The position numbers were made by a program, and so were the translations under genes. From Octopus sinensis (lineage: Eukaryota), in assembly GCF_006345805.1 (NCBI RefSeq), contig NW_021833609.1, forward strand, positions 1-57,453: a DNA stretch of 57,453 nucleotides, in the 5' to 3' direction. The notes below the pieces were generated by a model that was given only the letters and a program-made list of their open reading frames with translations, was not told where the DNA came from and ran no database searches. Below are positions 6,811-45,543 of this stretch, one piece after another (the first letter of the stretch is position 1; each line of letters begins with the position of its first letter).

Positions 6811-9189
6811 ATGATTTCAGTGATATTGTTGATTGTGGTGCTGATGGCTAACAGCTGCCGGTGTGTGGATCATATCTACCATATAAAAGAGAATAATGAT
6901 GTACACAGCTTCATTGGAGATATTGTCAGTGATACACATTTACTGGATAATATACAGACTCGAGATGATAGCAACAAACTGACATTTAATGTACTCCAGG
7001 GTGGTACTGATGGAGGTGTTCAGTTATTTAATGTTACACCTGGAGGACAACTGTACACAGCTGCCATATTGGATGCAGAATCTCTTTGTCAATATAATGT
7101 GGAATGTTTCAGGATATTGGAAATAGCAGTTCAAGAAGGCCATTCTTTTATGAAAATATTAGAAATCAAAGTTGTAATAGAAGATGTCAATGATAATTAT
7201 CCTATTTTCCCAAACAAAGAATTTCATTTAACATTTGATGAAAGTGATTCAAAAGGCTCAAAAGGAAGAATTCCAAAAGCCATCGACAATGATGTCAGTA
7301 CTCAAAATTCTAAACTTGTATATCAGCTTAAAAAAGGTGAAGATATTCCTTTCAAACTGTTCGTTTCTAAAGAATTAGATGGAACAGATTTACTGCAACT
7401 AACTTTGGAAGGCAACTTAGATCGTGAGAAAAAAGACATTTACAATTTTCAGTTGATTGCAAGAAATGGGGGATCTCCGCAAAAGGAAGGTGTACTGGAT
7501 ATAATGATATCAGTACAAGATGAAAATGATAATTCCCCAGTGTTCTCCCAGAATATCTATAACATCACTATCAATGATACACACCAGATAAACAAACCTG
7601 TTCTAAGACTTTCTGCCACAGATTTAGATATGGGGGGAAATGGAAAAATTTCTTATACTCTCAGTCCTAAAACACCGAATAAGATAAAAGAATGCTTTCA
7701 ATTGAACAGAGTAACTGGAGACTTATTTGTAACAACAGAATTTCAGTTTGGAAAATCCTATAAAATACTTGTCAAAGCCACAGATAATGGTAAACTGCCT
7801 TTGTCCTCAATTGCCACTGTTTTCATAAATGGTATCAGTCACATTAACAATTCACCAAACATTGACTTCAGATTTGTCATTAAGTCAACGGGAAACACAG
7901 CTGCAATCTCAGAAGCATCTAAAATTGGCAGTTTTGTTGCCTATGTCAAAGTTACTGACAGTGACAATGGAGCAAATGGCCAAGTGAAATGCCATTTACA
8001 AAACAGATATCTTCAGCTAATTTCAATTTCTGAAAAGAAATACAAAGTTGTTGTCAAGAGTGAAATAGATAGAGAGAGTGAGAAGAGCTTTAATTTCACC
8101 ATTAAATGTCTAGATAATGGTTTACCTCCGTTGAAAGTAGAGAAACGGTTTTCTGTGCTGGTTACTGACATAAATGATGTACAACCTCAGTTTAGTCAGG
8201 ACATATTTAAGTTTCTCACCTATGAAAATGAACACAAAGACTTCCCTGTTGGATATGTCAATGCCACAGACCCAGATATTGGAGATGGAGGACAATTAAC
8301 CTATTCTCTATTATCTAATGGAAAAGATATTCTACCATTTCAGATATCTGATGTGGGATTCATTTCCACAACTGAGTCCCTAGACAGAGAAGAAAAGAAC
8401 CTGTATGAGTTTAAGGTTTTAGTAAAAGATAAAGGAACACCATCACTGGAGAAGAGAGCAAATGTTGTTGTTGAGGTTATGGATTTAAATGATAATGCTC
8501 CCTATTTCAGTTTCCCTAATGTTGACCCTTTCAGTCTTAATGTCCACTACCATCCCCACTCTGACCATGATATCACAGTTGTTAGGGCCTCTGACAGAGA
8601 CAGCCAACACAATGCCTTCCTCACATATGAAATACTCAGAGGTAATGAGAAACACTTATTTCAAATGAACCATCACTCTGGTGTCTTATCTTTCTCTCGC
8701 TCACTTTACCAAAATGATGCTGGATTCTATGAACTGGAATTAGGTGTGAAAGACAGTGGCAGTCCAGTTCTGTCATCGACAACAACTTTGTCTTTGACTC
8801 TCACAGTTAGTAACAGCACATCAAAGATATTTAAGACCCCTTCAAAGACAACAACAGAATCAAGTAATGGTCTCCAATTGAATGTGATGATTGTTATTGT
8901 TATAGCAGCTGTGATCGTATCAGTTGTCATAGTGATCTCTATATCGATCTGTATAGTTCATAGACTGAAGCAGACAGACAACAACTATAACAACAGTGTT
9001 GATATGTACCACAAGGTTACACCTGCATTAAACGTGCAATCAAAATATATATTTGATCCTACCTGTGTTCCTCCTGGAGTTCAGTACACAGTGGAGAGAA
9101 ATCTGAAGAAACCCCAACAACCAATGGTAGATAGAGAAGATATTCAGTACAGAACCATGCCAATGATCAGATTAAGAGAAAATCAACAG
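6811..9189 (+). CDS. Protocadherin gene A, large exon (signal peptide, EC1-EC6, TM, juxtamembrane tail); CDS join(6811..9189,9505..9655,11338..11657), 949 aa
   Basis: Acceptor ttttcag| at 6803, ATG 6811 (MISVILLIVVLMANSCRC). Cadherin motifs DVNDN, LDRE, DENDN, DINDV, DLNDN; EC1 LCQYNVEC loop; TM VMIVIVIAAVIVSVVIVISISICIV. Phase-0 donor CAG|GTAAGA at 9189. Confidence 0.95.
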
Positions 9190-9504
9190 GTAAGATAATT
9201 TTCCATTAATTTCAAAGTATTTCGCCTTTCAAAATTCCAGTATTAACATGAAATTTGAAGTAATTTACGAAGAACTTTCGAAGCAGTGCTACAAAAGGCA
9301 AAAGATGAAGATAATCATATTTTATCAATTCTAATTTCTGCAATGAAGATTCCAAATTATTGTTTAATATTTTATACTAACACACATGATAATTATTATG
9401 ATCTATATAAATGGTGATACTTGATGTTACACCTTATAATATGCAAACAAAACAAGAATTATGAAATGTCATGAAATAGAGTGGATCTATTTTACTGTTT
9501 CTAG

Positions 9505-9655
9505 ATGTTTGTTCCAAGAGAAGAAAGTATGTCTCCAGGTTACAGAGAACTAAATAGTGCTGACCAATTCACTGAGATGTCAACATTGTCATCTCTCACT
9601 GATAGTGGTCATGGGTGGAGTGTTGGCAGTGCTGGACACTATGAGGAACTGCCAG
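9505..9655 (+). CDS. Protocadherin gene A, 151-bp cytoplasmic exon
   Basis: ctag|ATG...CCAG|gtaag, phase 0 to phase 1. MFVPREESMSPGYRELNSADQFTEMSTLSSLTDSGHGWSVGSAGHYEELP. Same length in all five paralogs. Confidence 0.9.
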
Positions 9656-10105: not shown

Positions 10106-10146
<41 letters not shown>

Positions 10147-11337
10147 TATTTAAGTAGTTGAATGAATTATCCTAGTATGGATAATTCGGTTAACCGATAC
10201 CTGGGTAGTGATGTCGAGAATAAAGGAATTTTGTTAAATCAGCGTTCAACTCCATTCTTTCATTTATTTATATATATATATATATATATAGTGTGTGGTA
10301 TTGTGCAGGTGTAATTTTTGTATGCAAGGAAATTATTCTGTTTTCATAAAGGTAAAGTGGTGGTTATGAGCCCCTTAAATTCTGAAGCTGTTGTAGGTGT
10401 ACCAATTTGATATACAGTGTGTCTTGGATGTTTGAAATCTAGGGGGAGCTCATTCCTCTTTTAGTCTGAATATACTTGGCTTCTTTCTGTGAAAAGATAT
10501 TTGTGGGCATCAAAAAGAGAGGACGATGGAAAAGAAAAAAAAATAACTCAGTACAGCGCAAACACTCACAGAAACACAAGATTATTGTCAAACCCATAAA
10601 TATCATTCCTTTAAGACGCTTGGAACCTTTTTTTCTTTTATTTCAAGTATGAAACCAAATGTTTGTCTGTGTACCTACTTCATATCTTCTTAGCAGTGTG
10701 GAAGTATTACTAGTACTATATTTTTGGTGCTATTCTGGCGTGTGATCCACAAATGAGATTATTTTGTTACATTTTGAATTATTTTGTACATACTTAAAAT
10801 TTTAAATGTACTTTTTCAAAAATTCTTAGTATTTTGATAAAAAGAGAACCATATAATAATTAAAATAAGCATGTAGATCACCCACCAAAGTAAGTTTGTC
10901 CACGTTGATCACTCAGAAAGTAGCACTAACACAAAGTATACTAAAAAGTAACCTAAAGTAGTCTCCCTTTCAATTGTACATCACATGACAAAGTTGCACG
11001 TTTCTTTTTCTTAAGAAATGTGAATTTAGTGGCTGGTTTCTTATAAAAATGCAACAGCCTTTCTCTTGTCGCTGATCACATTGTAAAAATCTGTAGCCAA
11101 CATTTTATGGGGTTTTAGAAATTGAAAAGTAAACTAAAAAGTAACCGAGAGTAATTTCCTCCGTAGATCACATGCCAAAGTAGCACCATACTTTTGTAGT
11201 TGTTGTTATTAAAATGTACACATACTTTGACTTTCTTTTATTTTGAAAAACGTATGTAAGAAACCTTGCTTCTATTCACCATGCAAAAAAAGGAAAAAAA
11301 ATTATACAAGGTAACCTATAAATCGATATATTTCCAG

Positions 11338-11657
11338 ATTTGTGTCCTTATCAAAGTGATCACACATGGAACAGGAGAAACCAACTTCCACACACAATCA
11401 ACAGATCAAGGGGAAATAACAATGATCGACATCCTTATCCAAACGTTGACAATAATACTTTTTGCAATCGTGACCAAATACCCTTGACTGTAACTGGTAA
11501 CACAATTGACATAACTGAACAATCATTTTCAGAACCAATGACAAGTGCCTTTATTCCATACTCTAAGCCACCCCTAACAACCGTACCAAAAGTAGCAACA
11601 CTACCGAAGGTATCTTCATTAGCTCAGGTACCGCCATTACCTACACCACAAAACTAA
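11338..11657 (+). CDS. Protocadherin gene A, terminal exon
   Basis: ttccag|AT TTG TGT CCT, in frame after the phase-1 donor. DLCPYQSDHTWNRRNQLPH...VPPLPTPQN*. Confidence 0.9.
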
Positions 11658-13317: not shown

Positions 13318-14981
13318 GTAAGTATTTATTAAAAGTTATTTTGTTGTGTAAATTGGTTCTTCAGATATTTGTTCATCTCTCTACCAGTAACCTACAATCC
13401 AGGAAATACTACATCAATGTATAAGTCAGATTAGTACTTCCTGTATTACAATGTTATTTTCAAACGTCTTTTACTTAATTATTTCCAATACATTTTCTAC
13501 AAATATTGAAGCTTGGACGTTTCTAAAAAATAAAAAAACTGTTTATTGTTATTTTAACAGCTATATAACAATTACATTCTTTGAATACATATTTCTTTCT
13601 TCAGTATTCTCAGTTTTGTCATCTATATAGTAATAGTTTAAGTTAATAACGACAGGATATAATTATGATAATGGCAAGATGTAGATTATATTAGTTGAAT
13701 TCTTAACGAACTTTTTGCTCAATATTGTGAAATGCTCACTATTCTATTTTCTTTAGACTGATTCATTTTATGAATGAGCGATTGCGTAGGGTTTATTAGC
13801 AAGGGAGGTTACTCTTAACGTACTAATGAGGAAGTTGTTTAGGCTGTTGATTGACCTGTTAGAGATGACAGTCAAACCTCCCTCGAATCATATCCCCCAG
13901 TCTTGAGAAACAGAATGTCACGTAACATAGTGTATTTTTCAAATTTTCTAAAAGCTTGAATGTTTTGGATCATAGATCTGTTCGTTCTTGCTGACCTGGG
14001 GCTAAACAGCAACAGTAACTCTTAATGACTCCATTATACGTACATTATTTACATTTGATGGATATTTGTCCTCATCTTGTTTGTTGTTAACACAACTTTT
14101 CGGCTGATATACCTTCAAGCCTTCTTCAGGTATCTTGGGGAAATTTCGAACCTGGGTTCTCATTCCTGAGGTATTTTTCGCTGTTACAGATATTATTATT
14201 AACATTATAATCTCATTTTCCATGCCAGAATTGAATGGTCAGTTTCACAAGAGCCAGCGAGTTGTACTGCGTCAAGCTCCAGTCTCTGCTGTAGTATGGT
14301 TTCTACAGCTGGATACTCTAGCCATTTCAGTGTGTAGTGGGTGCATTTATGTGGCACTATCACTAGTTAGGTCAGTGTAAACTGGCAATACAGGACCGTG
14401 GAGCTGACTGGGATGTGTTGAGGGAAGTGGTTACATGCCAGGTGATAAGAAATTAAAATATGATAAAGAGATAAAAATAGGTGTCTTGTAGAGGAGATAC
14501 ATGATTACTCCAATTAGAAAGGGAAAGATGGTGATGAGGTGTGAAGATGTACCCTTAGAAGTTGAACATAAAAGAAGTGGGCTAGACAGTGACACAGGGT
14601 GAATGAGTTGGAAAGTTGACGAGTGTGGTCAAATAATATTTCCCAGTGTCAAACTGTGATTTTACTTACAATTATGTAAATCTGGTATGTTAACCAAGTA
14701 AACAATCATTGACATACTGCTATTAAAAAGAAGAGGGCAAGAACATAAATATAATTTTATTCAGATATACTTTCATTTCCAAAGAATTTAATCAAATTTT
14801 ATTAAAGAATCATAATTCTGTCTTCACTTTTATGTTTAATGTTGATGGTTGATTTTAATAGTTTGAGAATTATATTTGACTTGTGATTGATTTACGGGAC
14901 TAAATGTTAAGATGTATTTTATCTACATTTATTAAATTCTTCTTTGTGAATATCAGCATGTAATTATATTTCAGATTCAAA

Positions 14982-17357
14982 ATGTTTCCAGTATTAATGT
15001 TGATGCTGTTGTTGTTGGCTGAGAGCTGCCTTTGTGTGGACCATACCTACCATGTGAAAGAGAACAATGATGTACACAGTTATATTGGAGATATTGTCAC
15101 TGATACACACTTAATGGATAATATACAGTCCCAGGATAACAGCGACAAACTGACATTTAATGTTATCCAGGGTGTTACTGACGGAAGTGTTCAGTTGTTT
15201 AATGTTACACCTGGAGGACAACTGTACACAGCTTCCATATTGGATGCAGAAATTCTTTGTCAGTATAATGTGGAATGTTTCAGGATATTGGAAATAGCAG
15301 TTCAAGAAGGCCATTCTTTTATGAAGATATTAGAAATCAAAGTTATGATAGAAGATGTCAATGATAATTATCCTATATTTCCAAAAAAGGAACTTAAAAT
15401 ACAATTTGATGAAAATGATTTGATAGGAACGACAGAAACACTTCCCAATGCTATTGACAAAGATTTCAGTGTTCAGAATTCTAAACTCTCTTATCAACTG
15501 AAAGCAGATGAAGATATTCCTTTCAAATTGTTTGTTTCTAAGAAATCAGATGGAATTGATTTATTACAACTAATTTTGGAAAGTAACTTGGATCGTGAGA
15601 AAAAAGATGTATATAATATACTATTAATTGCCAGAGATGGAGGATCACCACCAAAGGAAAGTATATTTCATATACAAATATTGGTAGAAGATAAAAATGA
15701 TAACTCCCCTGTTTTCTCGCAAAATATCTACAATGTTACTGTAAATGGTACGCACAGAATAAACAAACCTATTCTGAGGTTGTCTGCAACAGATTTAGAT
15801 GAAGGAGAAAGTGGAAGAATTTCTTATATCTTTAGTAATGCCAAAACACCAAATAAAATAAAAGAATGCTTTAAGTTGGATGAAGCAACAGGAGAGTTGT
15901 TTCTGAAGCAAAAATTTCAGTTTGGAAGAATTTATAAATTATTTGTTGAAGCCAGAGATAATGGTATTCCTTCAATGTCTTCAACAGTTCCCATTCTAAT
16001 AAATGGAATCAGTCACATTAACAATCCACCAAACATTGATATCAAATTTGTTATAAAGTCAACTGGAAACACAGCTTTCATCTCAGAAGCATCTAAAATT
16101 GGCAGTTTTGTTGCTTATGTCAAAGTTACCGACAATGACAGTGGAAAAAATGGACAAGTGAAGTGTCATTTACAAAACAGATATCTTCAGCTAATCTCAG
16201 TGTCTGAAAAGAAATACAAAGTTGTTGTCAAGAGTGAAATAGATAGAGAAAGAGAAAAGAGCTTTAATTTCACCATTAAATGTCAAGATAATGGTTTACC
16301 TCCATTGAAAGTAGAGAAACAGTTTTCAATGCTGGTTACTGACATAAATGATGTACAACCTCAGTTTAGTCAGGACATATTTAAGTTTCTCACCTATGAA
16401 AATGAACACAAAGACTTCCCTGTTGGATATGTCAATGCCACAGACCCAGATATTGGAGATGGAGGACAATTAACCTATTCTCTATTATCTAATGGAAAAG
16501 ATATTCTACCATTTCAGATATCTGATGTGGGATTCATTTCCACAACTGAGTCCCTAGACAGAGAAGAAAAGAACCTGTATGAGTTTAAGGTTTTAGTAAA
16601 AGATAAAGGAACACCATCACTGGAGAAGAGAGCAAATGTTGTTGTTGAGGTTATGGATTTAAATGATAATGCTCCCTATTTCAGTTTCCCTAATGTTGAC
16701 CCTTTCAGTCTTAATGTCCACTACCATCCCCACTCTGACCAGGATATCACAGTTGTTAGGGCCTCTGACAGAGACAGCCAACACAATGCCTTCCTCACAT
16801 ATGAAATACTCAGAGGTAATGAGAAACACTTATTTCAAATGAACCATCACTCTGGTGTCTTATCTTTCTCTCGCTCACTTTACCAAAATGATGCTGGATT
16901 CTATGAACTGGAATTAGGTGTGAAAGACAGTGGCAGTCCAGTTCTGTCATCGACAACAACTTTGTCTTTGACTCTAACAGTGAGTAACACCACATCAAAG
17001 ATATTTAAGACCTCTTCAAAGACAACAACAGAATCAAGTAATGGTCTCCAATTGAATGTGATGATTGTTATTGTTATAGCAGCTGTGATCATATCAGTTG
17101 TCATAGTGATCTCTATATCGATCTGTATAGTTCATAGACTGAAGCAGACAGACAACAACTATAACAACAGTGTTGATATGTACCACAAGGTTACACCTGC
17201 ATTAAACACCCAATCGAAATATATATTTGTTCCTCCTGGTATTCAGTACACATTGGAGAGAAACATGAGCAAATCTCAACAACCCATGATGGATATGGAA
17301 GGTGTTCACTGCAGTGATGGATGGGGTAAACCAGCTTTCATTGAAACACATCAACAG
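14982..17357 (+). CDS. Protocadherin gene B, large exon; CDS join(14982..17357,18954..19104,19399..19703), 943 aa
   Basis: Acceptor tttcag| at 14974, ATG 14982. Six cadherin repeats + TM. Donor CAG|GTAAAA at 17357 (phase 0). Confidence 0.95.
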
Positions 17358-17551
17358 GTAAAATATTTGTCAGCTATTTAATAATGTTGAAATATGTGTA
17401 TTAATTACTGAAGCCTAGTTTGACCAATGCATTGTGAGTGAATTTGGCCAATAGAAACTGCATGAAAGAAATCCCATGTGTGTGTGTGTGTACTATATTT
17501 TATTAAATGTTCTCAATATTTCGATTAACAACAATCTGAATGGAAGATAAT

Positions 17552-17950
17552 ACTCTTAACTCTTTTACTTGTTTCAGTCATTTGACTGCGGTCATGCTGG
17601 AGCACTGCCTTTAGTCGAGGAAATCGACCTCCAGGACTTATTCTTTGTAAGCCTGGTACTTATTCTATTGGTCTATTTTTGCCGAACCGCTAAGTTACGG
17701 GGATGTAAACACACCAGCATCGGTTGTCAAGCGATGTTGGGGGGACTAACACAGATACACAAACACACACACATATATATATACATACATACAACGGACT
17801 TGTTTCAGTTTCCGTCTACCAAATCCACTCACAAGGCTATGGTCGGCCCAAGGCTATAGTAGAAGACACTTACCCAAGGTCCCACGCAGTGGGACTGAAC
17901 CCAGAACCATGTGGTTGGTAAGTAAGCTACTTACCATACAGCCACTCCTA
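17552..17950 (-). mobile_element. SINE family A
   Basis: Reverse complement of the 5564 element, with tail and tRNA-like head. Confidence 0.8.
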
Positions 17951-18953: not shown

Positions 18954-19104
18954 GTATTTGTTCCAAGAGAAGAGAGCATGTATCCAGGTTATAGAGAACT
19001 AAACAGTGCTGACCAATTTAGTGAAATGTCAACATTATCATCTCATAATGATAGTGGTCATGGATGGAGTGTCGGTAGTGCTGGACATTATGAAGAACTA
19101 CCAG
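18954..19104 (+). CDS. Protocadherin gene B, 151-bp cytoplasmic exon
   Basis: ttag|GTATTTGTTCCAAGA...CCAG|gtaagt. VFVPREESMYPGYRELNSADQFSEMSTLSSHNDSGHGWSVGSAGHYEELP. Confidence 0.9.
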
Positions 19105-19398
19105 GTAAGTGATAAATTCTTGTTTCCATTTCCGTGACTGTTGCTTTATTTTAATGATAACATTTTTGAAGTTCTTTTTAAATCAAAGCTTTTTGTCTAA
19201 AGCACATTTTCCTTTCTGTGATATCAGTTGTAAGGCAGAAAAATATTTAGTTATGTACATCTCAATGTATACGTGCATACACACACAAACGCCCTTTAGT
19301 TCTTATGTCAAGATAAAGAATGTACTCTTAGAATTTATCCTTCATTTTTGGTACAATACTCAAATTGCATTATAATCTTTAAATGTAACTGTTTTTAG

Positions 19399-19703
19399 AT
19401 CTGTGCCGTTACCAAAGTGATCTCACATGGATTAGGAGAAATCGACTTCCACACACACTGAACAGATCAAAGGGAGATAACAATGGCTATCCCTTTCAAC
19501 CAGACGCCGATATGGACTCTTCCTATAATCAAATACCCTTGACTATAATTGGGACCACATCGAATATAGCTAAACATCCATCTACGGTAGCAAGGACAAA
19601 CGACTTTACTTCAAGTAGTAAAGTACCTCTATCAGCTGTACCAAAGGTAAAAACATTGCCAAGGGTACCTCCAGTACCTCCTGTGACAACACTAAACAAC
19701 TAA
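19399..19703 (+). CDS. Protocadherin gene B, terminal exon
   Basis: ttttag|AT CTG TGC CGT. DLCRYQSDLTWIRRNRLPH... in frame with ORF 19512..19703, ending VPPVTTLNN*. Confidence 0.9.
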
Positions 19704-19844
19704 CACCATACTTGAAAAAAACAAAAACAATGAAAACAAACAAAACAATACCTAAAGTGCTTGAAAAATACTAATAGGCAATTTGTTTAAATATGAAAAT
19801 GTTATTAAGAATCTTTTTTCTTTCTTTTTCTTTTTCTTTTTTAA

Positions 19845-20067
19845 TTGTTTCAGTCATTTGACTGCGGCCATGCTGGAGCACCGCCTTTAGTCGAGCAAAT
19901 CAACCTCGGGACTTATTTCTTTGTAAGCCCAGTACTTATTCTATCGGTCTCTTTTGCCGAACCGCTAGGTGACGGGGACGTAAACACACCAGCATCGGTT
20001 GTCAAGCTATGCTAGGGGGACAAACACAGACACACATACATATATACGACAGGCTTCTTTCAGTTTC
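19845..20067 (-). mobile_element. SINE family A, 3' half
   Basis: Matches the 3' half of the family A consensus seen in other copies. Confidence 0.75.
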
Positions 20068-21485: not shown

Positions 21486-22561
21486 GTAAGTATTTCTTAA
21501 AAGTTTCTGTTTTGTGTAAATAATTTATTTAGACATTTATAACACTCTCTCTCTTTCTTTCTCTCTCTGTGTCTCTGTCTGTCTGTCTCTCTCTCTCTCC
21601 AAGAAACAACAATAAAAATAAGTTTAGTGACTTCCACATCCTCATGCTATTTGAGTAAAGACTTAATTTTCCTTGTCACCTGCGTTACCTTTAACAAATA
21701 TATAACGTTGGTGTTAAGAAATATTCTGATGTAGAAGTTTATCACTTACAGATGTATTTAATAATTATAATTATCAAAATATCTTTATGATATTGTGCAC
21801 CATATTTAGTCAGGATGTTAACGTAAAATAATAGGATATCATAAGATATATATATATATGTGCTTGATAATCGAATTTCCATGTTGCATTGTAAATTTGA
21901 TATGTCTTGTTTTCATCATATTCTATTATTAGAACAGAGTGTAAATAAGCTGGGAACAAGGGAGGCTATTCTTACTGAAATAGTAAATTCGGTGCAAATT
22001 AGTGAAGCACTGCTTTGGAAAACAATAAATAAATAAATAAATAGAAAAATTTCACGATGCAAAGTAAATTATTTCGTAAACTTTTTTGAGACGTCTTACA
22101 ATCTTGAACCACCAAGAAAATTTATTCAAGGGTCAAATTTATAGTTTAGGACGAGACCGTGAATTTCTTAATTTTTATTTTTTCTAAACACCCCCTTCTC
22201 CACCCACAGTCATCATCTTTATTGTCATTACCATCATTAAGATCTTTTTCAGCATGCTTGCATGGCTCAGATAGATTGCAATTAAGCAGATTTTCCTACG
22301 ACTGGGCACCCTTCCTGTTGCTAACCATTATCCGTTTCCAGGCAATGTGATATTTTCCCAAGGCCAGACATGTTTTTGCAGAATATGGTAATTAACCCTT
22401 TAGTGTTCAGATTATTCTATCAAACATAATGCTTATTGATTCCCTTTGATTTGAATTAATCATGCATTATCTCATATCTTCAAGATCTTGATGGTATAAT
22501 TACTTAATGTAGAATAACATTGTGGGGTAGGTGTGAGAGCCTGGATCTGGTCAGTTTGAAC

Positions 22562-25519
22562 ATCATCATCATCATCATCATCATTTAGCGTCCGTTTTCC
22601 ATGCTAGCATGGGTTGGACGGTTCAACTGGGGTCTGGGGAGCCCGAAGGTGCACCAGGCCAGTCAGATCTGGCAGTGTTTCTACAGCTGGATGCCCTTCC
22701 TAACGCCAACCACTCCGAGAGTGTAGTGGGTGATTTTATGTGCCACCGACACAGGTGCCAGACGAGGCTGGCGAACGGCCACGCTCGGATGGTGTTTTTA
22801 TGTGCCACCGACACAGGTGCCAGACGAGGCTGGCAGACGGCCACGCTCGGATGGTGTTTTTATGTGCCACTGACACAGGTGCCACATGAGGCTGGCGGAC
22901 GGCCACGATCGGATGGTGTTTGTTACGTCCCCAAAGCACGGAGGCCAGTCTATGCGGTACTGGCTACGGCCACGTTCGGATGATTTTTTGTGTGCCACCG
23001 GCACTGGTACCACAAAGATACAAATTCCATTGATGTCATCTATTTTGATGTTTTGATTTGATTTGATTTTCACTTGCCTCAACAGGTCTTCACAAGTGTC
23101 ACAAGAAGGACGGTATGCACAGGTGGACTGACTACGTCCAGGTAGGGGCCATGGGTTATGGCCTGACTAGTCTTGCCGGGTCTTCGGATGGTGTTTTTAT
23201 GTGCCACCGACACAGGTGCCAGATGAGGCTGGCGAACGGCCACGATCGGATGGGTTTGTTGCGTGCCCACAGCACGGAGGCCAGTCGATGCGGTACTGGC
23301 TACGGCCACGTTCGGATGGTTTTCTTGTGTGCCACCGGCACTGGTACCACAAAGATACAAATTCCATTGATGTTCATCTATTTTGATTTGATTTGATTTG
23401 ATTTTCACTTGCCTCAACAGGTCTTCACAGGTCTTCACAAGTGTCACAAGAAGGAAGGAAGGTATGCACAGGTGGACTGACTACGTCCCAAGTAGGGGCC
23501 ACGGGTTATAGCCTGACTAGTCTTGCCGGGTCTTCGGTTGGTGTTTTTATGTGCCACCAACACAGGTGCCAGATGAGGCTGGCGGACGGCCACGATCGGA
23601 TGGTGTTTGTTATGTGCCCACATCACAGAGGCCAGTCGATGCGGTACTGGCTACGGCCACGTTCGGATGGTTTTCTTGTGTGCCACCGGTACTGGTACCA
23701 CAAAGATACAAATTCCATTGATGTTCATCTATTTTGATTTGGTTTGATTGATTTGATTTGATTTGATTTGATTTTCACTTGCCTCAACAGGTCTACACAA
23801 GTGTCACACACTTGCCTCAACAGGTCTTCACAAGTGTCATAAGTAGGAAGGTATGCACAGGTGGACTGACTACGTCGCCGGGTCTTCGGATGGTGTTTTT
23901 ATGTGCCACCGACACAGGTGCCAGATGAGGCTGGCGAACGGCCACGATCGGATGGTTTTCTTGTGTGCCACCGGTACTGGAACCACAAAGATACAAATTC
24001 CATTGATGTTCATCTATTTTGATTTGGTTTGATTTTCACTTGCCTCAACAGGTCTTCACAAGTGTCACACGTGTCACACACTTGCCTCAACAGGTCTCCA
24101 CAAGTGTCACACACTTGCCTCTGCCTCAACAGGTCTTCACAAGTGTCACACACTTGCCTCTGCCTCAACAGGTCTTCACAAGTGTCACACACTTGCCTCA
24201 ACAGGTCTTCACAAGTGTCATAAGAGGGAAGGTATGCACAGGTGGACTGACTACGTCGCCGGGTCTTCGGATGGTGTTTTTATGTGCCACCGACACAGGT
24301 GCCAGATGAAGCTGGCGAACGGCCACGATCAGATGGTGTTTGTTGTGCCCACAGCATGGAGGCCAGTCGATGCTAGGGGTACGGCTACGGCCACGTTCGG
24401 ATGGTTTTCTTGTGTGCCACCGGTACTGGAACCACAAAGATACAAATTCCATTGATGTTCATCTATTTTGATTTGGTTTGATTTTCACTTGCCTCAACAG
24501 GTCTTCACAAGTGTCACACGTGTCACACACTTGCCTCAACAGGTCTCCACAAGTGTCATAAGAGGGAAGGTATGCACAGGTGGACTGACTACGTCGCCGG
24601 GTCTTCGGATGGTGTTTGTTGTGCCCACAGCACGGAGGCCAGTCGATGCGGTACTGGCTACGGCCACGTTTGGGTGGTTTTCTTGTGTGCCACCGGCACT
24701 GGTACCACAAAGAATACAATTCCACTGATGTTCATCTATTTTGATTTGTTTTGATTTGATTTTCACTTGCCTCAACAGGTCTTCATAAGTGTCACAAGAA
24801 GAAGGAAGGTATGCACAGGAGGACTGACTACGTCCCAGGTAGGGGCCACGGGTTATGGCCTGACTAGTCTTGCCGGGTCTTCTCCCGCACAGCATACTTC
24901 CATAGGTCTCGGTCTCTAGACATTTCCTTAGTGAGACCTAAAGTTCGAAGGTCGTGCTTCACCACCTCGTCCCAGGTTTTCCTGGTCTACCTCTTCCACA
25001 GGTTCCCTCAACTGCTAGGGTGTAGCACTTTTGCACACAACTATCTTCAGCCTTTCTCGTCACATGACCATACCAGCGCAGCCGTCTCTCTTGCACACCA
25101 CAACTGACGCTTCTTAGGTTCAACTTTTCTCAAGGAACTTACACTCTGACGATTATGAACACTGACATTACACATCCATCGGAGCATACTGGCTTCATTT
25201 CTTGCGAGCTTACGCATATCTCAGCAGTCACGGCCTATGTTTCACTACCATGTAGCATGGCTGTACGTACACATGCATCATACAGTCTGCTTTTACTCTG
25301 AGCGAGAGGCCTTTTGTCACCAGCAGGGGTAAGAGCTCTCTAAACTTTGCCCAGGCTATCTTACTCTAGCAGTTACACTTTCAGCACACCCACCCCCGCT
25401 ACTGACTTGGTCTCCTAGGTAGCGGAAGCTATCAACTACTTCTAGTTTGTCTCCCTGGAACGTGGCAGAAGTTGGTCTCTGCACATTTCCAGTGTTTATT
25501 GCTCCTGAGCATTTGCCAG
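22562..25519 (-). mobile_element. 5'-truncated RTE-clade LINE with tandemly expanded 3' region and (GAT)n tail
   Basis: Minus strand 25500-24860 translates (with lesions) to GDKLEVVDSFRYLG...FRELLPLL...MLRWMCNVS...ERRLRWYGHV...GRGRP.KTWDEVVKHDL..LGL...DRDLWKYAV, an RTE ORF2 C-terminus. It is followed by repeated 3'UTR units and ends at (CAT)n 22562-22585. Confidence 0.85.
22720..24900. repeat. Complex tandem repeat (~270-450 bp units with ~30-60 bp sub-repeats) from the RTE 3' region
   Basis: Six recurrences of CTATTTTGATTTG..TTTTCACTTGCCTCAACAGG near 23040, 23380, 23730, 24015, 24465 and 24737. Internal repeats of CACTTGCCTCAACAGGTCTTCACAAGTGTCACA and TGTGCCACCGACACAGGTGCCAG. Confidence 0.9.
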
Positions 25520-25658
25520 ATTAACTATTTTGGCCGGATATGGCCGGTTTAAATACTAAAGGGTTAAATAACCTTCATCTGCAAGAAGCAAGTGATGACA
25601 ACACCAGGAGACACATACACATACACACTCACACACAAACATAGGACAGGTTTCTTTC

Positions 25659-30838: not shown

Positions 30839-30989
30839 ATGTTTGTTCCAAGGGAAGAAAGCATGTCTCCAGGTTACAGAGACCTAAACAGTGCTGACCA
30901 ATTCAGTGAGATGTCAACGTTGTCATCTCACACTGATAGTGGTCATGACTGGAGTGTCAGTAATGCTGGACACTATGAGGAACTGCCAG
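30839..30989 (+). CDS. Protocadherin gene C, 151-bp cytoplasmic exon
   Basis: ttttag|ATG...CCAG|gtaagt. MFVPREESMSPGYRDLNSADQFSEMSTLSSHTDSGHDWSVSNAGHYEELP. Confidence 0.9.
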
Positions 30990-31552: not shown

Positions 31553-31739
31553 TTTCAATATATTCAGCAATATTATGAGCAATGTATATAAATACACAGA
31601 GATTTTCCCGCTAAAATATAGAAATATTAAAATTTTAGCTACTAAGAAGCAATTTAGTAAAACAGCATCATTTTGGTTTGTCTGAAATACATTCTAGATA
31701 GTGAACTCTTTGATTGATAAATTATTTGTTTCTTTCCAG

Positions 31740-32035
31740 ACCTGTGCCGTTACCAAGGTGAACTTACATGGAACAGGAGAAATCAACTTTCACCTACACT
31801 TAACAGATCACAGGGAGATAACAATAACAGATATTATCAACATAACGCTGACATAAACACGACCTGTTATCCTGACCAAATACCTGGTACCACATGGAAT
31901 TTAACTGAACAACCAGTTTCAGTACCAATGACAAGTCCGTTTACTTCATACAGTAATCCACCTCCACCAGATGTACCTAAAGTAACAACACTGCCAGAGA
32001 GTATCTTCAATACCTTAGGTATCACCAATTTATAG
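31740..32035 (+). CDS. Protocadherin gene C, terminal exon
   Basis: ttccag|AC CTG TGC CGT. DLCRYQGELTWNRRNQLS...PPPDVPKVTTLPESIFNTLGITNL*, TAG at 32033-32035. Confidence 0.85.
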
Positions 32036-32233: not shown

Positions 32234-32465
32234 TTACTCTTTACTCTCTTTTTACTCTCTTTTACTAGTTTCAGTCATTTGACTGCGGCCATGCTGGAGC
32301 ACCGCCTTTAGTCGAGCAAATCGACCCCGGGACTTATTCTTTTGTAAGCCCAGTACTTATTCTATCGGTCTCTTTTTGCCGAACCGCTAAGTGACGGGGA
32401 CGTAAACACACCAGCATCGGTTGTCAAGCAATGCTAGGGGAACAAACACAGACACACAAACACAT

Positions 32466-32496
<31 letters not shown>

Positions 32497-32666
32497 CGAC
32501 AGGCTTCTTTCAGTTTCCGTCTACCAAATCCAAATCCACTCACAAGGCATTGGTCGGCCCGGGGCTATGGCAGAAGACACTTGCCCAAGATACCACGCAG
32601 TGGGACTGAACCCGGAACCATGTGGTTGGTTAGCAAGCTACTTACCACACAGCCACTCCTGCGCCT
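32234..32666 (-). mobile_element. SINE family A (full length)
   Basis: Near-consensus reverse copy. A + strand 5' fragment follows at ~33088-33250. Confidence 0.85.
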
Positions 32667-35760: not shown

Positions 35761-36114
35761 AATAAGGGACAGAGTGAAGACTATTGAAAAGGTTGCAAGA
35801 CACAACGAAAATTTTAGGAAAATAAAAATAAGAAAAAAGGTGGAAATTTTACCGGTGAGTGTGTTAAATAATAAGGCACTAAAAGAGAATGACCCTCCCC
35901 AGACACAACAGAATATGCTTCAACACACAACTCATATAAAGAATCTTGCAAACCAAATCCAAAAACGAAATACATCAATAATACTTCCTAGAAATGTTAT
36001 CACCATTTTATTACAGACACTAAGTAGTGTTAATGAGAAATTCAAAATATTTGATCCTGAACACTTTTAATTAAGTCATAAAATATTTTATTCTTAAAAT
36101 ATGTATATATATAT

Positions 36115-36510
36115 AGGCGCAGGAATGGCTGTGTGGTAAGTAGCTTGCCTACCAACCACATGGTTCTGGGTTCAGTCCCACTGCGTGGCATCTTGGGCAA
36201 GTGTCTTCTGCTATAGCCCCGGGCCGACCAATGCCTTGTGAGTGGATTTGGTAGACGGAAACTGAAAGAAGCCTGTCGTATATATGTATATATATATATA
36301 TATATATGTGTATGTGTGTGTGTTTGTGTGTGTGTGTTTGTCCCCCTAGCATTGCTTGACAACCGATGCTGGTGTGTTTACATCCCCGTCACTTAGCGGT
36401 TCGGCAAAAGAGACCGGTAGAATAAGTACGGGGTCGATTTGCTCGACTAAAGGCGGTGCTCCAGCATGGCCGCAGTCAAATGACTGAAACAAGTAAAAGA
36501 GTAAAGAGTA
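36115..36510 (+). mobile_element. SINE family A (full length)
   Basis: tRNA-like head at 36115, (GAGTAAA) tail at ~36510. Confidence 0.85.
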
Positions 36511-36948: not shown

Positions 36949-37148
36949 ACTCTCTTTTTACTCTTTTACTTGTTTCAGTCGTTTGACTGTGGCCATGCTA
37001 GAGCACCGCCTTTAGTCGAGCAAATCGACTCCAGGACTTATTCTTTATGTAAGCCCAGTGCTTATTCTATCGGTCTCTTTTGCAGAACCGCTAAGTGACG
37101 GGGATGTAAACACACAGCATCGGTTGTCAAGCAATGCTAGGGGGACAA

Positions 37149-37213
<65 letters not shown>

Positions 37214-37378
37214 TACGACAGGCTTTTTTCAGTTTCCGTCTACCAAATCCACTCACAAGGCATTGGTCGGCCCGGGGCTATAGCAGAAGACACTTGCCCA
37301 AGATGCCACGCAGTGGGACTGAACCCAGAACCATGTGGTTGGTTAGCAAGCTACTTACGACACAGCCACTGCTGCGCC
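36949..37378 (-). mobile_element. SINE family A (full length), followed by a 3' half copy at 37480-37674
   Basis: Reverse copy, inverted relative to 36115-36510. Confidence 0.85.
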
Positions 37379-38385
37379 ACATTTCAATATTATAATTTCA
37401 AACTAATTAAATTCATCTTAGTTATATTCTCATTATATAAATGCATTTGTATCATGTGCCTTACTAATTACTGTGATATACTCTTTACTCTTTTACTTGT
37501 TTCAGTCATTTGACTGCAGCCATGCTGGAGCACCGCCTTTAATCGAGCAACTCGACTCCAGGACTTATTCTTTTTGTAAGCCCAGTACTTATTCTATTGG
37601 TCTCTTTTGCCGAACTGCTAAGTAACGGGAACATAAACACACCAGCATCGGTTGTCAAGCAATGCTAGGGGGACATTGTTATCAATTACTTAACAGTTTT
37701 TACTTCTGCTAATTTATACATATCATTAATAACCCAAGTTACATATTAATTAATATTAATTAATAATACAGTATGAGAATGTCATTGTGTATTTGGTCTT
37801 GGATACCTAAGCTTGAGATGGTGTGTGTGTGTGTGCGTGTGTGTATAAATCATCATCATCATTGATTAACATCTGCTTTCCATGCTGGGATGTGTTGGAC
37901 AGTTTGACTAAGGATTGGCAAGCCAGGAGGCTGCACCAGGCTCCAATCTGATCTGGATGCATTTCCTAATGCTAACAACTCCGTGTCTCATATTTTTGTT
38001 TGCCCACTCAGTTGTATTTATCAATTTATCTTTGTGTGTGTGCACGTGTATACATATATATAAAACACCCTAATGTGGGCCTTAACTCCCAAAGTTTAGT
38101 CATTTCTTTTATGATCCAAAAATAGGTCAAAAGTACTGAATGGATCTTCATGAAATTTGGAAATTATATTCTATGCATAAGGGCCATAACCCCCATGACA
38201 ATTCATATATTTTTGCTGTTGATGAAATTTTAACCATAGATATTAGAAAAAAATGAAGTAATATTTCTAAAATTTCATCTTCTTGCAAGTTACAAAGACC
38301 CCTCCATGGGGACTTAACACCATGGTGGTAGCATTCACTTAATGACACACTATAATTTAGTCAGTATGAGAAGGAAGGAAATGAC

Positions 38386-38803: not shown

Positions 38804-39119
38804 AGACAGACAGTTGATAAGCAGAACCATTGTAGCGATCCAGGGCAGATACGAAGCAAAATGAAGTAGCAGAAACATGTTCTTGAAAACAGGTAGTAAA
38901 ATAGAAAAAGCATGTTATTGCATCATGATAGATACTGAACATAATTGCAGAGTTTGGTGCAGTAAGCCTTTAGCTACACAGCTATGCACATCAAACTAAA
39001 TGCAAAACATGGAAAATGAAAAATACAATGTGGAAAAAAGCAGAGGAACAATGTTTGTGAATAACTTTCTTTGAAAAAGAAATAACAAACAGTTTGTGTT
39101 GTAATACAAAGTTAAATGT

Positions 39120-39522
39120 AGACGCAAGAGTGGCTGTGTGGTAAGTAGCTTGCTTACCAACGACATGGTTCTGGGTTCAGTCCCACTGCATGGCACCTTG
39201 GGCAAGTGTTCTCTACTATAGCCTCGAGCCGACCAAAGCCTTGTGAATGGATTTGGTAGATGGAAACTGAAAGAAGCCTGTCGTATATATATATATATGT
39301 GTTTATGTGTTTGTGTGTCTGTGTTTGTCACCCCAACATCGCTTGACAACCGATGCTGGTGTGCTCATGTCCCCGTAACTTAGTGGTGCAGCAAAAGAGA
39401 TCGATAGAATAAGTACTAGGCTTACAAAGAATAAGTCCTGAGGTTGATTTGCTCGACTAAAGGCGGTGCTCCAGCATGTCCACAGTCAAATGATTGAAAC
39501 AAGTAAAAGAGTAAAGAGAGTA
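39120..39522 (+). mobile_element. SINE family A (full length)
   Basis: Head and tail both present. Confidence 0.8.
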
Positions 39523-41388
39523 CATAGTTCTAGATAATTTTTGTGTGAGTGTGATAGTACACAAGAAGGTCCAGAGTAAGGTGAATGCAGCATATACTAC
39601 AAAAAGGAAGCTGAAGGAAGTTCTTCTTAGTTTGCTGCCCGGGAAGGTGGTTTCTGTGAGACAGAGCCAGTGAAACTTGATGTGCAACCGTGATAGCTAA
39701 TGTCCAGGGAACTGGAAATCACAGGATGCAAAAGTCAAGGTGTAAGAGCGTGCAATGTTGGCTGCTGAGACATAAGCAGTGCCAAGATTTTGCCTGCAAA
39801 ACATTGAGTTGTTTGCAGAGGCAAGGCTGTAGGTGCCAGAAAAGTGACAGTGACTAGCGAAGCGAGTCAAGCCATAAGGATGGTGGCAAAAGGGAGAAGT
39901 TCTGACATGCAAGAGACTTGGTGTTGATCAGGTGCCAGAGGAAGAAAGTGCATGGAATGCTACGTGATGCAAAGAGAAAAAATATATGCGTTTATAAGAG
40001 GTGGTTTGTGCGTCCTACAAACCAGAGAAGCGACATATGGCAAAAACACGTAAGGAGCTTGTTTACCGGATGAGAAAGGTTTGAGAAAAGCATTCAGCTG
40101 GAATAAACCTAGAAATGTGAGATTGGATAGCATGAGGCAGACTGCATGTATGTGTGTATGTATGCATGAACACTGAGCAGTAAAGTAATGTGCAAGTGTA
40201 ACTTCTGAAAGCATTGTGAAGCAACATCAATTGCAAAGTCTGATACAGTAACTTTCAGCAAGAGTTGAGCATCTAAGACTGAGTGTACAAGGTGAGGTGC
40301 TGAGTAGAGAAGAAATTGGAAGAGAAAAGCTCATGATGAGATACATGCAGAATGTTCAGTTTGTTGAAATTGTTCCAATGAATGCTGTTAAATGCCTGGT
40401 TGGTGAACAAAATGTCACATTTCTGATTACGAAGCTTTTTGAAGTGCTGTCCAGCTGTGAGGTGCTCAGAGTGACTGGAATTTGCTGTATAAGGCCACAA
40501 ATCCGGCTGCTGTACACAAGATGGAGCAGGAACGAGTCGAGATTAGTGGTGAGGTGGTGGTGGTGGTGTTTGCGTTGTAGTCAGGTACAAAGGCTGAGAC
40601 GGTGGCGGTGGTATTGGTGGTGTTGATGAGAATGCTGTTCTGCATGGCTGTCAAAGTCCAGCCACATGGAAAATTCGAGACAGGTGAATGCAATAGAAAA
40701 CTGTTGAGATCTGGCGTGCACATCCACTGCACATGCTCAGAGTGGTGATTGCATGGGAAGAACCAGTGAGGAAGATGAAGACGGACACCATGTCGGAAAT
40801 GCTCCGATGTGAAATTATTGGCAAAACGTTGACAGTTGACTTGGTGAGAGGGAATTGCTTCAAAGGAGATTATTTGAAGGAAGAATGCATATTCTGTTAG
40901 GTACGAGCTCAAAGTGAAGATGAATCCTAGAGGTTCACTTGAACAAAAGAAAATATCCTGATGTCGGGTCAACAGTTTGTAGTTGAGATGCGAGCAAAAA
41001 CTACGATTCTGAAAAGTGTATAATTACCATCTCTATACAGAGATGGTAATTATATACTTTTCAATTTTTAGTGCTCCCAAGAAGCAACAGGATTTCCCAT
41101 TAACACTCAGCTCTGAGTGTATTGCTTCCTGTTGCAAAAACAGCTGTAATCCAGTGAAAATGACTAGGAGAGTCCAGTTCCTTAATGCATATTCCAATCT
41201 AGTATTCGACTGACATTTTATTTTCAAGTGTATGTAAATTGAGGCCAAACAGCTAGTTTTAATGTAGCTATACTTAAGTGCTATATATATATATATATAT
41301 AGATAGATAGATACTAGCAGAGGCACTTGACATTGCCCGGGAATGAAATTGTTCCTTATATATGTGTGTGTGTGTGTGTTTGTGTGAA

Positions 41389-41703: not shown

Positions 41704-41733
<30 letters not shown>

Positions 41734-42475: not shown

Positions 42476-42870
42476 CTAGCAGTATCGCCCGGCGTTGCTC
42501 GGGTTTGTAAGGGAAATAACTACATAAGCATTTTTAGAGATGTAAAGTATAATAGCCATCTCAATATGGCTAACTACAAAGGTGGGTGTTACTGTAGCTT
42601 TTTACGTTCTGAGATTTAATAATAAATTTTTAGAGAGTTACTTCCCTTATATATGCCAAAAATGCATTAAAAATGGGAAAAATATGATGGTAAATTTTTT
42701 TTAAATCGTAGACTTATCGTAGACGCGCGCTAATACCCAGAAGGGCTCAATATGAATCACGACTATAAGATACCCGGTTTTGGTTAAACTGCACCGCAAA
42801 ACGTGGGAGTAGTTAGGAATCTAAATCGTAGGAGACAGACAGCACACAACCTCTCTTTTATATATAAAAA
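42476..42870 (-). mobile_element. Non-autonomous Helitron-like element
   Basis: A|CTAGCAGTATCGCCCGGCGTTGCTCGGG end; body shared with the 4810 and 48649 copies. Confidence 0.65.
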
Positions 42871-43146
42871 TATACTAGAGGAGAGTGAATGTTGCAATAA
42901 TACACTTATGAACATCTAATGTATAATACAGCTGTCAAGTTCTTTATTTGTTTAAGCTAGAATTTGAGACACATTATTGGTCAAATAAAGTAGTTAATAT
43001 CCAAATCACTGATTGCTATTTGATATTACTTACATAATGTTTTGAGATGATTATGAGTTAGCTACTCGAATTGTTAATCACTAGATATCAGGGAATGATT
43101 TATATACAATTTAGCATTTTATTTCAGATTGGCAAATCCTATACTA

Positions 43147-45543
43147 ATGAAGATGTTATCAGTGATACTGTTGGTGTTGTTAATGACTGAAAGCTGCTGG
43201 TGTGCGTATCATATCTACCGCATGAAAGAGAACAATGATATAAACAATTATATTGGAGATATTGTCACTGATATGCACTTACTGGATGATATACAGACTC
43301 AAGATGATAGAAGCAAACTGACATTTAAAATACTCCAGGGTAGTACTGATGGAAGTGTTCAGTTGTTTAATGTTACACCTGGAGGACAACTGTACACAGC
43401 TGCCATATTGGATGCAGAAACATTGTGCCAATACAATGTGGAATGCTTCAGGATTTTGGAAGTAGCAGTTCAACATGGCCATTCTGTTATCAAGATATTA
43501 GAAGTCAAAGTTATAATAGAAGATGTCAATGATAATTCTCCTATATTTCCAAATAAGGAATTTCAAGTGTCATTTGATGAAAGTGTGACCAAAGGAATCA
43601 AAGAAATCATTCCAAATGCGATTGATAACGATATTAGCTCTCGGAATTCTAAACTCAATTATCAACTGAAGGAAAATGAAAATGTTCCTTTTCAATTGGT
43701 TGTTTCTAAGTCACGTGGAACTGATTTATTGCAACTAATTTTAGAAGGTTCCTTAGACCGTGAGACAAAAGATATGTACAATATTCAGTTAATTGCCAAA
43801 GATCAAGGAACACCACCAAAGGAAGGTGTATTGGATATAAAAATATTAGTGGGAGATAAAAATGATAATTTTCCTGTTTTCTCCCAGAATATTTACAATG
43901 TCACTATAAATGATACATACCAGAGAAGCAAGCCTCTTGTTAAGGTCTCTGCATCAGACTTAGATAAAGGGGAAAATGGAAGAATTTCTTATGTCTTTAA
44001 TAATGTTAAAACACCTAAAAGGATAAAAGAAAGCTTTAAATTAGAGGAGGCAACAGGGGAGCTATTTTTGAAGAAAGAATTTAATTTTGGTGAGATTTAC
44101 GAGATATTTATTGATGCCAGAGATAATGGTAAACCACCTATGTCATCAACAGTCACAGTTTTTATAAATGGTGTCAGTCATCTTAACAATCCTCCCAAAA
44201 TTGATGTTAAATTTGTTATAAAGTCAACTGGAAACACAGCTGTCATCTCAGAAGGAACTCAAAATCAAAGTTTTGTTGCTTATGTCAAAGTTACCGACAA
44301 TGACAGTGGAGAAAATGGACAAGTGAAATGTCATTTACAAAATAGATATCTTCAGCTAATCTCAGAGTCTGAAAAGAAATACAAAATTATTGTCAAGAGT
44401 GAAATAGATAGAGAGAGTGAGAAGAGCTTTAATTTCACCATTAAATGTCAAGATAATGGTTTACCTCCATTGAAAGTAGAGAAACAGTTTTCTATGCTGG
44501 TCACTGACATAAATGATGTACAACCTCAGTTTAGTCAGGACATATTTAAGTTTCTCACCTATGAAAATGAACACAAAGACTTCCCTGTTGGATATGTCAA
44601 TGCCACAGACCCAGATATTGGAGATGGAGGACAATTAACCTATTCTCTATTATCTAATGGAAAAGATATTCTACCATTTCAGATATCTGATGTGGGATTC
44701 ATTTCCACAACTGAGTCCCTAGACAGAGAAGAAAAGAACCTGTATGAGTTTAAGGTTTTAGTAAAAGATAAAGGAACACCATCACTGGAGAAGAGAGCAA
44801 ATGTTGTTGTTGAGGTTATGGATTTAAATGATAATGCTCCCTATTTCAGTTTCCCTAATGTTGACCCTTTCAGTCTTAATGTCCACTACCATCCCCACTC
44901 TGACCAGGATATCACAGTTGTTAGGGCCTCTGACAGAGACAGCCAACACAATGCCTTCCTCACATATGAAATACTCAGAGGTAATGAGAAACACTTATTT
45001 CAAATGAACCATCACTCTGGTGTCTTATCTTTCTCTCGCTCACTTTACCAAAATGATGCTGGATTCTATGAACTGGAATTAGGTGTGAAAGACAGTGGCA
45101 GTCCAGTTCTGTCATCGACAACAACTTTGTCTTTGACTCTCACAGTTAGTAAGAACACATCAAAGATATTTAAGACCCCTTCAAAGACAACAACAGAATC
45201 AAGTAATGGTCTCCAATTGAATGTGATGATTGTTATTGTTGTAGCAGCTGTGATCGTATCAGTTGTCATAGTGATCTCTATATCAATCTGTATAGTTCAT
45301 AGGTTGAAGCAGACAAATAGAAACTATAATAGTAGTGTTGATATGTACCATGGTGTTATACCAGCATTAAATATGCAATCAAGATATATGTTTTATCCTG
45401 CTTGTGTTCCTCCTGGAGTTCAGTACACATTGGAGAGAAATGTGAAGAAATCTCAACAACCAATGGTAGACAGAGAAAATATTCACTGCTGGACTATGAC
45501 AAATGATAGACGGGTTGAACCAGCTTCAGTAAAACATCATCAG
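43147..45543 (+). CDS. Protocadherin gene D, large exon; CDS join(43147..45543,46053..46203,48082..48416), 960 aa (ATG 43153 is the start homologous to paralogs)
   Basis: Acceptor tttcag| at 43127, first in-exon ATG 43147. Six cadherin repeats + TM. Donor CAG|GTGAGA at 45543. Confidence 0.95.

Follow-up and report, generated by a model that had tools for sequence, protein, structure and literature searches.

How can tandem protocadherin (Pcdh) genes be nearly identical in one part of a single large exon and strongly diverged in another? This question is raised by the octopus locus analysed here, in a window (the whole stretch of 57,453 nt) that is an entire unplaced scaffold of Octopus sinensis (NW_021833609.1, assembly GCA_006345805.1). 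The window carries four intact large open reading frames (ORFs) of ~800 codons each, A to D, arranged head-to-tail on the + strand. Each encodes a signal peptide, six extracellular cadherin (EC) repeats, a transmembrane (TM) helix and a short cytoplasmic stretch, with at least five Pfam Cadherin matches per ORF, and the closest database relatives of the window proteins are Octopus proteins. We propose, with a probability that we put at about 0.9, that the membrane-proximal segment of these genes is homogenised by recurrent ectopic (interlocus) gene conversion between old paralogs.

Domain-restricted identity within the large exon

The homogenised block lies on the + strand at 8164-8964 in A, 16338-17138 in B, 28651-29451 in C and 44503-45303 in D, and takes in the end of EC4, EC5, EC6, the linker, the TM helix and ~25 juxtamembrane residues. 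Over this 801-nt core all six pairs of A-D are 98.4-99.3% identical. A first-pass annotation of the window had counted a single base of difference between A and D over ~650 nt, complete identity of B and D over ~640 nt and a handful of differing sites in C. These counts proved accurate: there is one mismatch, at 8568, in the 650 nt of A 8164-8813 versus D 44503-45152, an exact run of 638 nt is shared by B 16338-16975 and D 44503-45140, and C differs from both B and D at 8 positions of the same stretch, mostly synonymous. C also has small private synonymous clusters at codons 481-492 and 594-598. The annotation had assigned the homogenised segment to EC5-EC6-TM, which is correct as far as it goes, but the block starts in the second half of EC4 and runs ~25 residues past the TM helix. 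Its 3′ boundary is sharp, with D departing from A, B and C from 45301 on, and its 5′ boundary is graded across EC4.

The diverged, unconverted core of the exon is EC2-EC3, at 7207-7860 in A, 15378-16034 in B, 27694-28347 in C and 43546-44199 in D (all + strand). Among pairs of A-D, protein identity is 46-68% in EC2 and 54-66% in EC3, in agreement with the earlier estimate of half to two-thirds, and synonymous divergence (dS, by the Nei-Gojobori method) runs from 0.41 to saturation in EC2 and from 0.86 to 1.33 in EC3. EC1, which had been described as well conserved, is so at the protein level (76-87%), but with a dS of ~0.25 it is intermediate and not homogenised. In EC4 (protein identity 83-90%) dS is 0.11-0.49 over the first half of the repeat and 0.03-0.18 over the second. 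It is 0-0.05 in both EC5, where the proteins are 100% identical, and EC6, where they are 96-98% identical, then 0-0.03 in the TM helix and 0.24-0.62 in the rest of the cytoplasmic part of the large exon. Divergence at synonymous sites is therefore grossly non-uniform along the exon (0-0.05 versus 0.4 to saturated). Four-fold degenerate sites give the same picture, differing at 34-60% of positions in EC2-3 versus 1-5% in EC5-TM (Fisher p 3e-7 to 2e-13), and a Sawyer/GENECONV-type permutation of polymorphic sites yields p<=2e-4 in all six pairs.

Paralogs are closer than orthologs in the block

Comparison between species was made on 16 large exons. The window is collinear with O. vulgaris OX597827.1 at ~7.00-7.06 Mb (L001, L002; 94-99% nucleotide identity), and these loci supplied the orthologs Bv, Cv, Dv and Ev; the gene set is without the O. 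vulgaris ortholog of A, which falls just past L002. To A-D and these four were added S1 and S2 from the same O. sinensis array at a distance of ~100 kb (L003), three genes of O. bimaculoides (O1-O3; L004) and three of Argonauta hians (H1-H3; L005).

Neighbour-joining trees of these exons change topology between domains, with bootstrap support of 1.00 on either side. The EC2-EC3 tree follows orthology, grouping D, Dv and O1 (1.00) and Ev with O2 (1.00), and the EC5-EC6-TM tree places all ten sinensis and vulgaris genes in one clade (1.00) and leaves the ortholog clades unsupported (0.00). At synonymous sites of the block the paralogs A and D differ by 1/171, versus 16.5/171 for the orthologs D and O1 of O. 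sinensis and O. bimaculoides (p=2e-4). In terms of dS, the block values are 0-0.06 among paralogs, 0.07-0.10 against the O. bimaculoides orthologs and 0.2-0.3 against Argonauta, and at 87 of 768 block sites all vulgaris-group paralogs are fixed for a difference from all Argonauta paralogs. The Argonauta paralogs themselves display the mosaic independently, with a dS of 0-0.02 in EC5/EC6/TM and of 1.0-2.6 in EC2/EC3. Furthermore, a second subfamily of 22 proteins behaves alike: in EC5-6, proteins of one lineage are 98.8-99.4% identical and those of Octopus and Argonauta 95.7% identical to each other, compared with ~66% in EC2-3. Trees by domain and dS along the exon were among the checks proposed in the first-pass annotation for its claim that ectopic conversion is restricted to the membrane-proximal part, and both of them, together with the greater closeness of paralogs than of orthologs, strongly support that claim.

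The ratio of non-synonymous to synonymous divergence (omega) in EC2-EC3 is ~0.2 among paralogs and 0.27-0.44 among orthologs, which indicates purifying selection, and the diversity of EC2-EC3 is thus old divergence that has been retained rather than the product of accelerated diversification. Positive selection as the driver of EC2-3 divergence is ruled out by the same ratios. This bears on the possibility that whole genes were duplicated recently and that EC2-EC3 alone then diverged rapidly under adaptive selection. Tandem arrays do expand by duplication, and S1 and S2 resemble a young pair, with a dS of 0.10-0.16 even in EC2-3. However, with an EC2-3 dS of 0.4 to >1 at an omega of ~0.2 the synonymous sites of A-D are old too, their introns are unalignable, and the EC2-3 lineages already existed when the vulgaris group and O. 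bimaculoides separated, so that we find recent duplication scarcely credible.

Exchange of the block is double-ended

Homology between paralogs, as delimited with blastn, begins at the splice acceptor of the large exon and stops at its donor, and the flanks are unalignable, which bears out the earlier remark that flanking introns barely align. Outside the large exons the paralogs have in common only dispersed repeats and small exons. On either side of the block the sequence is gene-specific, as seen in the introns, in exons 2-3 and in the cytoplasmic portion that closes the large exon. Such flanking divergence argues for an internal, double-ended and non-reciprocal exchange, in other words for conversion and not for single crossovers. 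The gradual loss of identity across EC4 on the 5′ side suggests that individual tracts ended at different positions.

An alternative main homogeniser would be reciprocal but unequal crossing-over in the block, through which chimeric genes arise and disappear. The head-to-tail order of the array would permit it, gene number and content vary between species, and a truncated relic in the window, F, is truncated within the block and could stem from unequal exchange or from deletion. A single crossover would, however, homogenise all sequence 3′ of it, and the exon end, exons 2-3 and introns are gene-specific at 60-90%; moreover, O. sinensis and O. vulgaris have kept gene order and EC2-3 identity while the block was exchanged. 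We consider crossing-over unlikely to be the principal process for these reasons, and favour conversion.

Recent and patchy exchange

The scaffold duplicates 6.03-6.10 Mb of the O. sinensis chromosome CM016872.1 (locus L006) at 99.2-99.9% identity, or 96.6% around gene C, and is most likely a haplotig. Between the window and this chromosomal copy the large exon (2.4 kb) differs at 1 site in A, 4 in B, 0 in D and 79 in C. The 79 sites of C cluster at nt 30-570, covering EC1 and the start of EC2, and at nt 1114-1345 in EC4 (window positions 27330-27870 and 28414-28645). In these patches C, its second copy Cc and the O. vulgaris Cv are mutually 7-9% different, compared with ~1% in EC2b-EC3, and over nt 361-450 C has 1 mismatch to the paralog S1 and 10-12 to Cc and Cv. 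D and Dv likewise diverge most in EC4, where each 120 nt contain 9-12 differences, versus 0-5 elsewhere. In EC2b-EC3 even the nearest paralog is 18-32 differing sites per 90 nt away. Homogenisation is thus complete in EC5-TM, absent from EC2b-EC3 and patchy in EC1 and EC4, which take up short tracts from various donors. Footprints of very recent events within the block are AGC at codon 598, shared by A, B and D where all other genes, their O. vulgaris orthologs included, have AGT, and CAG at codon 586, which among A-D is found in B and D only. Two 1-nt deletions disrupt the frame of the chromosomal copy of C, and the difference between C and Cc reflects either consensus error or a conversion haplotype that still segregates, one allele having become a pseudogene.

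The codon at the start of EC6 (residue 586 of A; 8566-8568, 16740-16742, 29053-29055 and 44905-44907 in A-D) occurs in three states in O. sinensis: A has CAT (His), B, D and the chromosomal C have CAG (Gln), and the C of the window has CGT (Arg). Every gene examined from O. vulgaris, O. bimaculoides and Argonauta encodes His at this position, which is the sole non-synonymous variable codon within ~600 nt that are otherwise identical.

A model for homogenisation of the membrane-proximal segment

The genes are mosaics, their blocks evolve in concert and exchange between them is ongoing. We propose a model in which the starting point would be a head-to-tail array of paralogs that are already old, as judged from an EC2-EC3 dS of 0.4 to >1 and unalignable introns. 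Non-reciprocal copying, which we infer to occur by repair of double-strand breaks from a paralogous template, would repeatedly overwrite the second half of EC4, EC5, EC6, the TM helix and ~25 juxtamembrane residues. The block would in this way evolve in concert in at least nine sequenced genes (X1, X2, A-E, S1 and S2) across ~190 kb of CM016872.1, with each new variant either spreading to other copies or being erased. EC1 and the first half of EC4 would receive shorter and patchier tracts from varied donors. EC2-EC3 may be spared because its nucleotide identity of 50-80% is too low for heteroduplex formation, and perhaps also because overwriting it would cost each isoform its identity and be disfavoured by selection. 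Orthologs have conserved EC2-3, which argues that gene identity in this part is under selection. High identity within the block would in turn favour more conversion, and the mosaic could thereby maintain itself.

Conversion in the block may also be GC-biased. Derived changes in the block number 25 from weak (A or T) to strong (G or C) bases and 1 in the opposite direction, a skew that differs from that of cyto1 (p=1e-4), and GC content at third codon positions is highest in EC6 (0.39-0.41), though only modestly above that of EC2 (0.19-0.24). The EC2-3 control is skewed in the same direction (26:8; Fisher p=0.06 versus the block), and the case for GC bias is for this reason suggestive only.

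Several observations, of which the skewed control is one, weigh against recurrent conversion as we describe it. Homogenisation is weaker in O. bimaculoides, whose three genes form no clade in the block. In Argonauta EC2-3 is monophyletic (0.98), so that topology cannot separate independent duplication from conversion there and dS alone does. The block also diverges less than EC2-3 between species (orthologs of the window, L001 and L004), with a dS of 0.082 (28/342) compared with 0.143 (38/266), a ~1.7-fold difference (p=0.018) for which extra synonymous constraint, conversion among polymorphic copies and chance are possible explanations. Finally, both copies of C belong to one continuous-long-read assembly, and the differences between C and Cc could in part be consensus chimeras; polishing within that assembly could likewise have erased some residual differences between paralogs.

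The lower dS of the block between species would be expected if purifying selection on both protein and synonymous sites, for example for RNA structure or RNA editing, had preserved the block without any conversion. Cephalopod protocadherin transcripts are heavily A-to-I edited, and the 95.7% identity of EC5-6 between Octopus and Argonauta in the second subfamily also counts in favour of such constraint. Yet constraint cannot bring paralogs closer to each other than orthologs are, nor can it give rise to species-specific substitutions common to all paralogs. Omega between orthologs is 0.28-0.34 in EC5-TM, no lower than in EC2-3, and this likeness means that the identity of the block is not due to stronger protein constraint. 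Furthermore, the non-coding relic F still has the block sequence. Taken together, these points make constraint without conversion a very improbable explanation.

The last two of the opposing observations concern the assembly, and in their extreme form they would amount to an artefact in which near-identical segments were collapsed or cross-polished, so that consensus building itself produced the identical tracts. The window comes from a PacBio-era assembly, where it is an unplaced scaffold duplicating a chromosomal region, and the two 1-nt deletions in the chromosomal gene C resemble consensus errors. Against this, the paralogs of O. vulgaris, which was assembled independently, have near-identical blocks as well, and the mosaic is present in A. 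hians and, more weakly, in O. bimaculoides; the recurrence of one pattern in four separately assembled species indicates that collapse or polishing is not its main cause. Nor can collapse yield 87 fixed differences between species or incongruence at 100% bootstrap, and small paralog-specific variants of the block recur in the second O. sinensis copy, from which A, B and D differ by 0-4 nt per 2.4 kb. The odds of an assembly artefact thus appear very small, and conversion between paralogs provides the better explanation of the mosaic.

Comparison with vertebrate protocadherins

The first-pass annotation had drawn a parallel with the conversion pattern of vertebrate clustered Pcdhs, and this parallel is documented: according to PMC4978886, which cites Noonan 2004b, conversion in the vertebrate clusters is restricted by domain, and dS has its minimum in EC5/EC6 and its maximum in EC2/EC3. 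The octopus genes are like them in the tandem, same-orientation arrangement of large exons that each encode six EC repeats and a TM helix, in having the lowest dS in EC5/EC6 and the highest in EC2/EC3 with EC1 and EC4 intermediate, and in keeping the signal of orthology only in EC2-3. Unlike them, the octopus genes lack shared constant exons and have their own exons 2-3 each, as PMC9068888 reports for cephalopod Pcdhs, and the homogenised block takes in the TM helix. The octopus contrast is also much stronger than the mouse and Xenopus dS ratios in PMC4978886, at ~0 versus >1, and uninterrupted identity extends to 638 nt. According to PMC9068888 and PMC4978886, the octopus expansion was independent of the vertebrate one. 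The octopus system therefore resembles the vertebrate cluster in its evolutionary dynamics; we do not claim that it belongs to that cluster, and descent from the clustered Pcdhs is not supported.

In a sequence search of the PDB, the octopus protein aligns end-to-end with EC1-EC6 structures of vertebrate gamma-B4 and delta2 protocadherins with equal scores. The delta2 proteins (PCDH10/17/18/19) are like the octopus ones in having six EC repeats and being encoded by multi-exon genes with their own cytoplasmic exons; unlike the octopus array, delta2 genes are dispersed and single, with no array and no concerted evolution. Delta2 protocadherins are reported to lack the EC6 cis interface, and a cis function of the octopus block is consequently not to be assumed.

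For cephalopod arrays of the same family, 'recent duplications or gene conversion' and 'homogenization through gene conversion' have been proposed to account for species-specific clades (PMC6339937, citing Albertin 2015; PMC9068888). The cephalopod array papers (Albertin 2015; Albertin 2022, PMC9068888; Styfhals 2019, PMC6339937), to the extent that their text was available, treat the same gene family and arrays and state conversion at the level of the whole gene. In the searchable literature on cephalopod Pcdhs, where Albertin 2015 and Noonan 2004b are represented only at second hand, we found no domain-resolved analysis, dS by domain or ortholog-versus-paralog test.

EC2-3 is paralog-specific, yet conserved between orthologs (omega 0.27-0.44). 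A plausible functional reading that fits this pattern, put forward in the first-pass annotation by analogy with the vertebrate proteins, is that EC2-3 would carry trans-homophilic specificity and EC5-6 would form a module for promiscuous cis-dimers, with which the identity of the block across isoforms is compatible. Such a reading would be compatible with an antiparallel EC1-4 interface (EC2:EC3, EC1:EC4), which would match the ranking of variability. More tentatively, and with chances that we rate as clearly below even, octopods may have converged on the logic of the clustered Pcdhs. EC2-EC3 would then be a protected module for trans recognition and EC5-EC6-TM-juxtamembrane an interchangeable module for cis-multimerisation and signalling, with conversion, possibly GC-biased, keeping a 'virtual constant region' across at least ten genes in place of constant exons.

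Organisation of the locus

All coding features are on the + strand. The large coding exon of gene A (6804-9189, ATG at 6811) encodes the signal peptide, EC1-EC6, TM helix and juxtamembrane stretch and lies between a TTTCAG acceptor and a CAG/GTAAGA donor. Those of the other genes lie at 14975-17357 in B (ATG 14982; donor QQ/GTAAAA, its position computed from the ORF), 27269-29688 in C (ATG 27301) and 43128-45543 in D (ATG 43153; 45543 being the donor). In general the large exons are bounded by a TTTCAG acceptor 7-34 nt 5′ of the ATG and a CAG/GT donor. Beyond A-D, tblastn revealed the start of a gene E and the truncated relic F. The large exon of E begins at 56967 (ATG 57001) and is cut by the window end at 57453; its orthologs are P0003 in O. 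vulgaris and P0007 in O. bimaculoides. Relic F (50358-50793) is frameshifted and 5′-truncated, consisting of the end of EC6, the TM helix and the juxtamembrane stretch; its breakpoint falls within the homogenised block and its TM sequence is nearly identical to that of the block. The relic has small exons of its own (exon 2 at ~51282-51419, exon 3 at ~52464-52745) and is also found in O. vulgaris, where the annotation appends these small exons to the 3′ end of gene D (P0004, 1091 aa).

Related full-length proteins are ~955 aa long, of which ~165 residues beyond the large exon come from two small downstream exons. Cytoplasmic exon 2 lies at 9505-9654 in A, 18954-19103 in B, 30839-30988 in C and 46053-46202 in D, and its copies are not homogenised (72-91% nucleotide identity among paralogs). 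Exon 3, for the cytoplasmic tail, lies at 11325-11654 in A, ~19398-19655 in B, 31733-31999 in C and 48069-48383 in D, and a further exon 3, at 1690-1965, belongs to a gene upstream of A. Exons 2 and 3 are gene-specific, every gene having its own copies, relic F included.

TTTCAG acceptors are found 5′ of every start codon, at 6798-6803, 14969-14974, 27263-27268, 43122-43127 and 56961-56966. An acceptor just 5′ of each ATG means that the large exon is not the first exon, and the 5′ untranslated exon and the promoter are located further upstream. No promoter motif is common to the 350 nt upstream of each ATG, where only the splice acceptor is shared. The NCBI model XP_036355489.1 (LOC115230295, 3921 aa) is a read-through fusion of A+B+C+D, and the chromosomal copy is annotated as a fused model of 6653 aa; both are annotation artefacts of tandem genes on the same strand.

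Divergence between O. sinensis and O. vulgaris is unusually uneven along the locus. Gene B with its flanks (window 14361-17550 versus L002 21-3212) is 99.2% identical between the two species, with zero differences in its first 1080 coding nt, and adjoining segments are 94-97% identical. A GC-rich satellite (0.47-0.48) with periods of 62 bp and 351 bp occupies 22560-25840 between B and C, an interval that is unaligned between the window and the chromosomal copy, and has relatives at ~55610-55930. A dispersed repeat of ~400 bp that resembles a short interspersed element occurs at 80-93% identity, in both orientations, at no fewer than ten intergenic or intronic sites, which include 5562-5985, 17547-17949, 19808-20067, 32236-32666, 36108-36510, 36952-37384 and 39113-39531.

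Implications

The mosaic has practical consequences. Whole-gene trees will be distorted toward species-specific clades, and the phylogeny and orthology of octopod protocadherins should therefore be based on EC2-EC3 only. Reads from the block will be ambiguous among at least ten genes, which affects short-read mapping, RNA-seq quantification and RNA-editing calls. The cephalopod Pcdh expansion is the standard case of molecular convergence underlying large nervous systems, and the mosaic separates the gene-specific part of these proteins, the ortholog-conserved EC2-EC3, from the interchangeable part, EC5-EC6-TM, and thereby defines concrete constructs for adhesion and cis-interaction assays.

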